Below are positions 35,401 to 38,400 of a stretch of 64,000 nt of DNA, piece by piece. This DNA is from Macrostomum lignano (Eukaryota): NCBI GenBank assembly GCA_002269645.1, contig NIVC01000037.1, forward strand, positions 1,359,365 through 1,423,364, in the 5' to 3' direction. The notes below the pieces were generated by a model. That model had not been told where the DNA came from. It was given only the letters and a program-made list of their open reading frames with translations, and did not search any database. A program made the translations under genes and the position numbers. Each line of letters begins with the position of its first letter. Within the stretch, counting starts at the first letter, position 1.

Positions 35401-38400
35401 GGGCACTAGAGTGCTAGTTATGTACTCATATTCAATAGTGAATTGCTAATCTATGTATTGAGGATAAAGAGGATTGTTAATCTATGCACCGAGAAGACAG
35501 TGGATTGCTAATCTATACAAGACAGTGGATTGCTAATCTATTCAAGACAGTGGATTGCTAATCTATACAAGACAGTGGATTGCTAATCTATACAAGACAG
35601 TGGATTGCTAATCTATACAAGACAGTGGATTGCTAATCTATACAAGACAGTGGATTGCTAATCTAGACAGTTGATTGCTAATCTATACAAGACAGTGGAT
35701 TGCTAATCTATACAAGACAGTGGATTGCTAATCTATTCAAGACAGTGGATTGCTAATCTATACAAGACAGTGGATTGCTAATCTATACAAGACAGTGGAT
35801 TGCTAATCTATACAAGACAGTGGATTGCTAATCTATACAAGACAGTGGATTGCTAATCTATACACATGACAGTGGATTGCTAATCTATACACATGACAGT
35901 GGATTGCTAATCTATACAAGACAGTGGATTGCTAATCTATTCAAGACAGTGGATTGCTAATCTATACAAGACAGTGGATTGCTAATCTATACACATGACA
36001 GTGGATTGCTAATCTATACACATGACAGTGGATTGCTAATCTATTCAAGACAGTGGATTGCTAATCTATACAAGACAGTGGATTGCTAAGCTATACAAGA
36101 CAGTGGATTGCTAATCTATACAAGACAGTGGATTGCTAATCTACAAGACAGTGGATTGCTAATCTATACAAGACAGTGGATTGCTAAGCTATACAAGACA
36201 GTGGATTGCTAAGCTCTACAAGACAGTGGATTGCTAAGCTCTACAAGACAGTGGATTGCTAAGCTATACAAGACAGTGGATTGCTAAGCTCTACAAGACA
36301 GTGGATTGCTAAGCTATACAAGACAGTGGATTGCTAAGCTCTACAAGACAGTGGATTGCTAATCTATACAAGACAGTGGATTGCTAAAGTTCATAGTCAG
36401 GGGGCACTAATAATTACAGGCCTGGGATTTCGCTACAGCGTATTCATCATGTCGGCCACCGCCGCCTCAGCCAATCCCGGCTTCCGCTGGGCAACCAGCC
36501 TCTGGAGCTTCATCCTGGCCTTGCTCAGCTTTTCCTCAGAGTGTCTGCACACTCTGGTTTTGGCCGACGTTCTCAACACCTGGCTGTCTGGCAGGTGCGT
36601 CGGTTGCCATCAACGACTCCGCTCCCTGTTGGACCGCTGGTGGCCGCTCATGATGCTGTTCTCAGCTGTGCTGGCGCTCTCGTCTCTGCCACTGTTTAGT
36701 GCGGTAATCGCTGAGGATAAGAACCGAACCCGGCATTTGATTGACACATGATTCGCTAATATTATCACTAGTGACGAATTCTAACGAGTTGTAACTCTTG
36801 GCAGCTAGCGTGTTTGCTAATGCATTGTTAATGCTAAATCTGCTTTGATTAATAGATTTTTATTGAAAAAAATAAAAACTTGTCTGATCTCTCTGATCTC
36901 TGTGATCTCTGACCTCTCTTTGATCTCTGTGATCTCTGTGATCTCTGTGATCTCTGTGATCTCTCTGATCTTTGTGATCTCTGAGCTCTCTTTGATCTCT
37001 GTGATCTCTGTGATCTCTGTGATCTCTGTGATCTCTCTGATCTCTGTGATCTCTGATCTCTTTGATCTCTGTGATCTCTCTATAATCTTTCTTCTCTCTC
37101 TGATCTTTCTGATCTCTAATTTATCAGAGAGACATCCCCAATTAGATATCTTGAACTTTTGCTACTAAAAAACCTAAGTACGCGGATTAACAAGCTTACA
37201 AACTAATCAACAAAACTAACAATACCTCAGTTTGAAAAAAACTTTTCAATAAGCAAACTCTGAGCTCCCCGAGATAAACAGCCTGGGCAATGGCGATCCA
37301 CATCCGATTGCCCCCGTTTGCCCCCTGCTGTTGCAGAGACTCTCGCAGGCGCATTCGCTGCCTACTCGGCGCTGCTCTGCTGGCAGCCGGCCTGGCTGAG
37401 TGGGATTCTGTTCTTGACAGCGGCAATTCTCACCTTTCTCAACCTGGCCATCTGTGCCGACTGCCTGTCCGCCGTGGCCTTCACCGCCACCTCCGGCGCG
37501 CTGCGTCTCTGCGGCGGCCGGCCAATCAGCTTTCACGACCTCCTGCGAGTCGGCGGCGAAGGCCTTCGAGTCTGGTGGCTGCCGGCCTTCTGTCTGGGCA
37601 TGGCCGGCCTGCAGCTGCCGCTCAGCACCTCTGTGCGGGACTGCCGGCCTGAGTTCCTGCTGCCTCCTGGCTGCCGTTTCTGTTGTGGCTGCCGGCACCC
37701 CATATCCTTTAGCCTCAGGGTGTAGCCTGAGTACCCTACCTGTGACCCCAATACCCCAGCTGTGACTCCAATACCACAGCTGTGACCCCAATACCCCAGC
37801 TGTGACCCAAATACCCCAGCTGTGACCCAAATACCCCAGCTGTGACCCAAATACCCCAGCTGTGACCCAAATACCCCAGCTGTGACCCAAATACCCCAGC
37901 TGTGACCCAAATACCCCAGCTGTGACCCAAATACCCCAGCTGTGACCCAAATACCCCAGCTGTGACCCAAATATCCCAGCTGTGACCTAAATACCCCAGC
38001 TGCGACCCCAATACCCCAGCTGTGACTCCAATACCACAGCTGTGACTCCAATACCCCACCTGTGACCCCAATACCCCAGCTGTGACTCCAATACCACAGC
38101 TGTAACTCCAATACCCCAGCTGTGACTCCAATACCCCAGCTGTGACCCCAATACCCCAGCTGTGACTCCAATACCCCAGCTTCGACTCCAATACCCCAGC
38201 TGTGACTCCAATACCCCAACTGTGACTCCAATACCCCAGCTGTCACCCCAATACCCCAGCTTCGACGCCAATACCCCAGCTGTGACCCAAATACCCCAGC
38301 TGTGACCCCAATACCCCAGCTGTGACTCCAATACCCCAGCTGTAACTCCAATACCCCAGCTGTGACTCCAATACCCCAGCTGTGACTCCAATACCCCAGC

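Follow-up and report, generated by a model that had tools for sequence, protein, structure and literature searches.

The window analysed here is a stretch of 64,000 nucleotides, and its plus strand carries a gene which is best explained as coding for a divergent transporter of the SLC6 family (sodium:neurotransmitter symporter, or SNF, family) from a Macrostomum lignano-like flatworm. The gene was modelled manually from open reading frames and GT-AG splice sites; neither its 5' end nor its start codon could be located in this model. Between the exons for TM7 and for TM10-TM11, two neighbouring exons were identified, designated 8A and 8B, each of which is a candidate for the TM8-TM9 part of the protein. 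Upstream of the gene, an SLC6 paralogue is located in tandem. Neither the Rfam scan nor the tRNA scan of the window returned a match. The features are as follows.

About 11020-21609: upstream tandem SLC6 paralogue
17926-18176, plus strand: the single TM8-TM9 exon of the paralogue, 251 nt, phase 1 to 0, with a canonical sequence (GSGLTFIAYP...PAWSAVFFLMLLLLGFSSQ...)
24645-39909, plus strand: SLC6 (SNF family) transporter gene with 11 recognisable coding exons
24645-24858, 25564-25839, 27355-27484, 28758-28893, 31102-31340 and 33111-33238, plus strand: exons upstream of 8A and 8B
33111-33238, plus strand: exon 7, coding for TM7 and the start of EL4; donor ACA/GTGAGT, phase 1 at its end, carrying over one base, A
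36420-36703, plus strand: exon 8A, 284 nt, phase 1 to 0, ttacag/GCCTGG...AGTGCG/gtaatc
36699-36704, plus strand: cryptic donor GTGCGG near the end of 8A, with an exon end at 36698 in phase 1
36704-37336, plus strand: intron between 8A and 8B, 633 nt, containing a 9-nt minisatellite at 36885-37118
37337-37632, plus strand: exon 8B, 296 nt, phase 1 to 0, ttgcag/AGACTC...ACCTCT/gtgcgg
38632-38832, 39060-39224 and 39313-39909 (stop), plus strand: exons following 8A or 8B
38632-38832, plus strand: exon 9, coding for TM10-TM11, phase 0 at its start

The preliminary description of this DNA had named an SLC6 transporter, and this identity was borne out by profile searches. Combined with 8A, the gene product matches the Pfam SNF profile (PF00209) with 354.1 bits and an E value of 1.8e-105, and combined with 8B with 348.6 bits and an E value of 8.5e-104 (cut-off 27 in both cases). 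The match is full-length and above the gathering score, covering profile positions 3-521 of 524. The core motifs of TM1 (GNVWRFP...GGGAF) and of the unwound TM6 (G-x-G ... SYN) are present and align to DAT, and the best relatives in the PDB are dopamine, glycine and serotonin transporters with E values of about 1e-80. All 11 exons are open and have canonical splice sites. These data support the assignment as an SLC6/SNF transporter whichever of the two exons is used.

The nearest database proteins are two UniProt entries from M. lignano, A0A1I8F5Z4 (88% identity) and A0A1I8HVN2 (86% identity), followed by SLC6 proteins of molluscs, annelids and vertebrates, which are 29-34% identical; the protein search with the gene gave no match between 86% and 34%. 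Both M. lignano entries are poor automated models of other, nearly identical copies. Made independently of each other, they adopted 8A in one copy and 8B in another, which shows either exon to be acceptable to predictors and counts in favour of an alternative use. A0A1I8F5Z4 contains 8A with an internal deletion, by which most of TM9 is missing, and is frameshifted over a stretch elsewhere. A0A1I8HVN2 begins inside 8B: its residues 1-94 correspond to 37351-37632 and continue at 38632, joining 8B, from an acceptor at 37349, to exon 9, and it later runs into open reading frames antisense to downstream genes. Being predicted models and not transcript evidence, the two entries are no proof that 8A or 8B is expressed.

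Anatomy of exons 8A and 8B

The coordinates, splice dinucleotides, phases and peptides of both exons were re-read from the sequence and are as first described. The first bases of each exon complete the codon begun by the single base from exon 7, and each exon closes on a codon boundary. For 8B, the length of 296 nt is correct when the exon is counted from 37337; a second in-phase acceptor at 37349 (ctcgcag/GC) gives 284 nt, as in 8A. That 8B might act as an alternative first exon, or contain a start codon, was considered and rejected, since there is no in-frame ATG and the ATG at about 37290 lies in another frame. The polypyrimidine tract of 8A is weak (ctaataattacag) and is combined with the donor GTAATC, while that of 8B is strong (cccccgtttgccccctgctgttgcag) and is combined with the donor GTGCGG. 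Both donors are weaker than, and unlike, those of the constitutive exons, which are of the GTGAG type. A departure from the usual donor type is common in regulated exons.

A swap of EL4, TM8 and TM9 had been proposed, of which TM8, the intracellular loop and TM9 are indeed covered by either exon, whereas EL4 contributes only its last residues, at the position of the GPGLAF motif. The peptide of 8A begins with SLGFRYSV, contains SFSSE and forms two clear hydrophobic helices. The 8B peptide opens with KTLAG/S, depending on the acceptor, and contains TFLNLAI. Here, the initial assignment of two hydrophobic helices holds only in part, since helix 1 is strongly hydrophobic but helix 2 (TM9) has a marginal hydrophobicity and many Pro and Gly residues. 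At the end of both peptides, LPL plus three residues is found as reported, and the WW pair is located about 20 residues before the end.

Coding character and possible kinship of the two exons

In the 5.4 kb interval between exon 7 and exon 9, phase-compatible, stop-free AG..GT candidates of 150-450 nt occur at three places only, namely in an 18-nt minisatellite at 33393-35181, in the 8A region and in the 8B region. In the GC-rich stretches of 8A and 8B all three frames are open, so that an open frame alone is weak evidence there. The codon usage is specific for the frame. With a codon log-odds table trained on the constitutive exons only, the proposed frame scored +25.1 bits for 8A and +42.5 bits for 8B, as compared to -32 to -49 bits for the other frames. 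Per codon, this corresponds to 0.26 for 8A and 0.43 for 8B, with a range of 0.21-0.83 among the constitutive exons, and GC3 is 0.76 and 0.80, respectively, next to 0.73 in the constitutive exons. When the whole window was scanned for codon bias, the 8B interval was the fourth best among about 64,000 plus-strand 90-codon windows; nearly all peaks of the scan are recognisable exons, and one repeat, at 51792-52061, is also high. Codon usage thus supports the view that 8A and 8B are both coding sequence under selection.

The description of the two exons as duplicates was not substantiated by direct comparison. BLASTP of 8A against 8B gave 27% over 49 aa with an E value of 1.2, which is not significant, shuffling of the alignment gave p values of 0.18 (local) and 0.08 (global), and no DNA similarity was identified in the exons or their flanks (nucleotide p 0.17). 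The sequence similarity between exons that belongs to the definition of a cluster of mutually exclusive exons (PMC5740500) was not found for the pair. As judged from these alignments, the protein divergence between 8A and 8B is near-saturated, and their homology is seen only indirectly, in that each matches the SLC6 TM8-TM9 profile better than its shuffled versions.

This fit depends on the context in which the exons are scored. A segment HMM for TM8-TM9, built from nine eukaryotic SLC6 proteins, gave 80.6 bits for the paralogue's exon, 2.3 bits for 8A and no score for 8B; run against all six-frame open reading frames, it recovered the exon of the paralogue and neither 8A nor 8B. Taken alone, neither exon has a Pfam SNF match, and the local shuffle p for the segment is 0.03 for 8A and 0.3-0.5 for 8B. 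With a full-length eukaryotic SLC6 HMM, the construct containing 8A reached 454.4 bits, the one containing 8B 440.0 bits, the one with the paralogue's exon 537.7 bits and the one with the exon deleted 427.4 bits, corresponding to gains over the deletion of 27 bits for 8A, 12.6 bits for 8B and 110 bits for the exon of the paralogue. Shuffled 8A scored 432.3 +/- 3.7 bits, with 0 of 300 shuffles reaching the real score, and shuffled 8B 429.8 +/- 2.6 bits, with 2 of 300 doing so; the gains over the shuffles are 22 bits for 8A and 10 bits for 8B. An end-to-end alignment to the family profile gave a z of about 3.5 for both exons, where global and context profile tests of this kind partly reward any helix-loop-helix layout. 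By these profile comparisons, a weak but real likeness to SLC6 TM8-TM9 was shown for each exon, both being very remote from the canonical sequence. The SLC6 HMM also indicates that TM8-TM9 of this gene diverged far more than the remaining protein.

In the family alignment, read post hoc, a different ancestral motif is retained in each exon. 8B retains AFxAY and PAW where TM8 starts, 8A retains SFSS(E) where the family shows GLDSQ or GFSSQ, and both exons end with (S/G/Q)LPL plus three residues, like the homologue P0004 (GLPLCTR). In the LeuT fold, TM8 lines the substrate and Na2 sites, and the Na2-coordinating residues of TM8 are T354/S355 in LeuT and D-S in DAT and SERT. At these positions, 8A has S-S and 8B has L/N in an alignment of low confidence, in which SFSSE of 8A aligns to GLDSQ and TFLN of 8B has a gap. 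On this alignment, different pockets in the two isoforms are plausible.

Both 8A and 8B match the position and the flanking intron phases of the one TM8-TM9 exon of the paralogue, which also begins with the bases GC, like 8A and like 8B when spliced at 37349. The paralogue differs in having one exon only, of 251 nt and canonical in sequence. By the match in position and phase, 8A and 8B would thus be the equivalents of one ancestral exon.

Two such exons need not both be in use. According to the main rival reading, which we consider unlikely, one of them, either 8A or 8B, is constitutive, and the other, derived from an exon duplication or from a lost neighbouring SLC6 copy, is a relic which is not used, or was retired recently, and whose decay is not yet visible. 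That the pairwise similarity is not significant counts in its favour, but the lack of any residual DNA similarity also implies that the two have long been separate, and over such a time an unused copy should have degenerated. Each exon has a feature that a relic might show: in 8B, TM9 is marginal and the Ser-Ser pair of TM8 is absent, and in 8A, the polypyrimidine tract is poor and another genomic copy (A0A1I8F5Z4) carries a deletion in TM9. Against this, both have a frame-specific codon bias at the level of the constitutive exons, intact in-phase AG/GT sites and no stop codons. The SLC6 genes are tandemly arrayed here, so that stray exons are conceivable, and M. lignano, a hidden polyploid of recent origin, carries redundant copies (PMC10468722). 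At a near-saturated divergence, an unused copy of the corresponding age should have lost its frame, its splice sites and its GC3 periodicity; that frame, splice sites and codon bias were kept argues, indirectly, for a use of both exons. If only one of them is used, the locus would simply be an SLC6 paralogue from a flatworm in which an exon was left over.

Splicing, reading frame and the proposed exon switch

The lengths of 8A and 8B are both 3n+2 nt, and mRNAs containing both or neither are therefore frameshifted. This property, claimed from the outset, was found as expected: exon 7 joined to 8A and exon 9 is open, as is exon 7 joined to 8B and exon 9, whereas 7+8A+8B+9 and 7+9 run into early stop codons. 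Clusters of mutually exclusive exons were defined by Pillmann, Hatje and Kollmar with lengths that differ by no more than 60 nt, in steps of 3 (PMC5740500). By the same definition, 8A and 8B are neighbouring internal exons of the same frame and phase with GT-AG sites and without an in-frame stop, and their lengths are 284 versus 296 nt, or 284 versus 284 nt with the acceptor at 37349. Since the intron between them has 633 nt, steric exclusion is not expected. Competing RNA pairings of the docking/selector type gave no convincing candidate; only short, weak inverted repeats were identified, for example 37324-37340 with 37505-37521 (76%) and 37604-37617 with 38623-38636 (86%, a CTGCAG palindrome).

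The reading that we favour, with a probability of roughly 0.55, is an old tandem exon duplication in which 8A and 8B are used mutually exclusively and exclusivity is enforced by the reading frame. An ancestral TM8-TM9 exon would have been duplicated in tandem long ago, both copies would have been retained as coding sequence, with only one at a time being spliced between exon 7 and exon 9. Messenger RNAs with double or zero inclusion would be out of frame, reach a stop codon early and be degraded by nonsense-mediated decay, leaving protein to be made only from mRNAs with a single inclusion. Two 12-helix transporters would result, with their differences confined to TM8, intracellular loop 4, TM9 and the end of EL4. 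Of these, the 8A form would retain the Ser-Ser pair at the Na2-binding TM8 positions of LeuT and DAT and the 8B form would be without it, and on account of this pair the isoforms would be expected to differ in ion coupling, substrate handling or both. From the genomic sequence, we infer in this way a common origin of the two exons, the use of both in vivo, their exclusivity, the involvement of nonsense-mediated decay and a functional difference.

The two less likely alternatives concern how 8B enters an mRNA. A cryptic phase-1 donor at 36699 had been pointed out as a caveat, and it is real: 8A ending at 36698 (36420-36698) and joined to 8B is in frame and reads through. Inclusion of both exons by this route would yield a 14-helix protein with an additional TM8'-TM9' hairpin, an insertion that would preserve the membrane topology of the remaining protein. 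We regard this outcome as very improbable. Although the cryptic donor shares the hexamer GTGCGG with the donor of 8B, it has no G at -1 and no A at +4. The construct with both exons scores 443.9 bits with the SLC6 HMM versus 454.4 bits for 8A alone, an 8A-8B junction is present in neither public model, and we know of no obvious room for a second TM8-TM9 pair in the core of the LeuT fold.

It is also improbable, though less so, that 8B belongs to a different transcript, made as a 5'-truncated mRNA from an internal promoter or a spliced-leader acceptor, or that the entire copy of the gene is a redundant homeologue in decay, with neither exon being of importance. Spliced-leader trans-splicing is used in M. 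lignano (cited in PMC10468722), and A0A1I8HVN2 starts at the 37349 acceptor without any upstream exons; however, no in-frame start codon is present near the 5' end of 8B, and a protein beginning at TM8 would not be a transporter. The far stronger divergence of TM8-TM9 compared to the rest of the protein would suit a decaying copy, while the 11 open exons with canonical splice sites and the strong SNF similarity do not.

If mutually exclusive use is accepted, a more far-reaching version of it can be put forward tentatively, with the odds rather against it. One SLC6 gene would give rise to two transporters by the exchange of a whole TM8-IL4-TM9 module, one version of which is without the serines of the Na2 site, and the switch would change ion coupling or substrate specificity and not merely tune the transporter. 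As a cassette switch running through the core of an SLC6 protein it would be without precedent, and it would have been kept despite a near-total divergence of its two versions. If both isoforms are made, they would represent a natural experiment on a LeuT-fold transporter, with TM8 and TM9 replaced against a constant background of the ten remaining helices. A comparison of such isoforms would reveal which share of ion coupling and selectivity resides in the TM8-TM9 module.

Comparison with known exon substitutions

An alternative use of adjacent exons, as proposed for 8A and 8B, is found in SLC7A2 (CAT-2A and CAT-2B), which belongs to the SLC7 and not to the SLC6 family and is, like SLC6 proteins, a solute carrier of the APC/LeuT-fold superfamily. 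The swapped segment of SLC7A2 is located around the TM8-TM9 loop and sets the substrate affinity. As for 8A and 8B, the lengths of the SLC7A2 exons are not multiples of three (140 and 137 nt, phase 2-1; supplement of PMC5740500). However, the SLC7A2 exons are clearly alike, short and experimentally established, whereas 8A and 8B are barely alignable, encode two whole helices and are a candidate pair.

Carriers offer well-known examples of homologous exon substitution, and SLC7A2, SLC25A3 and SLC39A14 are annotated as having mutually exclusive exons in the supplement of the human atlas (PMC5740500). Exons 3A/3B of SLC25A3 and 4A/4B of SLC39A14 have the phases 1-0 of 8A and 8B and encode transmembrane segments of a carrier; they are tandem-duplicated, and their joint inclusion shifts the frame, as it does for 8A with 8B (supplement of PMC5740500). 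In contrast to 8A and 8B, they belong to unrelated folds, have a high exon-exon similarity and are known for their tissue-specific use.

The proposed enforcement by the reading frame has precedents as well. In Caenorhabditis elegans, double inclusion or skipping of mutually exclusive pairs with lengths that are not multiples of three leads to premature stop codons, and the respective isoforms rise in smg-2 mutants (PMC4165533). Frame-enforced exclusivity with nonsense-mediated decay has been documented in humans too (PMC5740500). 8A and 8B would be policed in the same way as the C. elegans pairs, which were shown by RT-PCR (PMC4165533).

A characterised precedent in the SLC6 family had not been known to the preliminary description, and the searchable literature is in agreement with this. 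No SLC6A entry was found in the accessible parts of the supplements to the human atlas of mutually exclusive exons (PMC5740500), no snf (SLC6) gene is present in the main text of the C. elegans study (PMC4165533), and literature searches for mutually exclusive exons together with SLC6 returned generic matches of the rMATS type only. Insects aside, no SLC6 precedent was thus found in these sources, to the extent that they are accessible, while the mechanism proposed for 8A and 8B is known from other carriers. If both isoforms are made, SLC6 would be added to the carrier families in which homologous exon substitution creates diversity.

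Automated protein models of the main SLC6 gene

Two automated UniProt models of M. lignano correspond to the main SLC6 gene, A0A1I8F5Z4 containing 8A and A0A1I8HVN2 containing 8B, the candidate alternative TM8-TM9 exons. Compared with the window, A0A1I8F5Z4 was found to carry small indels, at the 31102 versus 31126 region and at 39166-39224, which the model accommodates through a different exon 5 acceptor and, in exon 10, a frameshifted stretch. Either the older M. lignano assembly contains errors at these sites, or the model derives from a homeologue that is decaying. A minus-strand ORF at 42738-43313 encodes a RING-variant (MARCH-type) domain; A0A1I8HVN2 traverses the antisense strand of this ORF, and is therefore chimeric.

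Further downstream on the minus strand, a Ty3/gypsy-type retrotransposon pol ORF (45384-48189; RVT_1, RNase H and integrase) was identified, with a main ORF of 785 aa. A coding segment for ATP synthase subunit c is present there in two almost identical tandem copies, 49036-49305 and 51137-51406 (ATP-synt_C, E ~8e-14 each).

Minisatellites in the introns

Each of the introns around exons 7-9 of the main SLC6 gene contains a long minisatellite with its own unit, reaching a maximum of ~99 copies.

Minisatellites around exons 7-9
33393-35181, 18-nt unit
35494-36387, 25-nt unit
36885-37118, 9-nt unit
37732-38493, 20-nt unit

The 8A acceptor is located 33 nt past the end of the 25-nt-unit array. Most of the remaining introns, in this gene and in a second SLC6 gene alike, are also filled with arrays of this kind.

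The upstream SLC6 paralogue

This second gene (11020-21609, plus strand) lies upstream in a tandem arrangement. One of its introns hosts a degenerate mariner/Mos1-type transposase (15737-16806, plus strand; HTH_48 and Transposase_1), which is broken across three frames. Near the window start, a stretch of very high GC content (239-2026, plus strand; GC 0.69) contains an ORF of 595 aa with a weak Glypican match (E 5.6e-10).

Over the aligned exons, the paralogue shares ~35-43% identity with the main SLC6 gene and is the more canonical in sequence. Its TM8-TM9 region is encoded by one exon only, 17926-18176.
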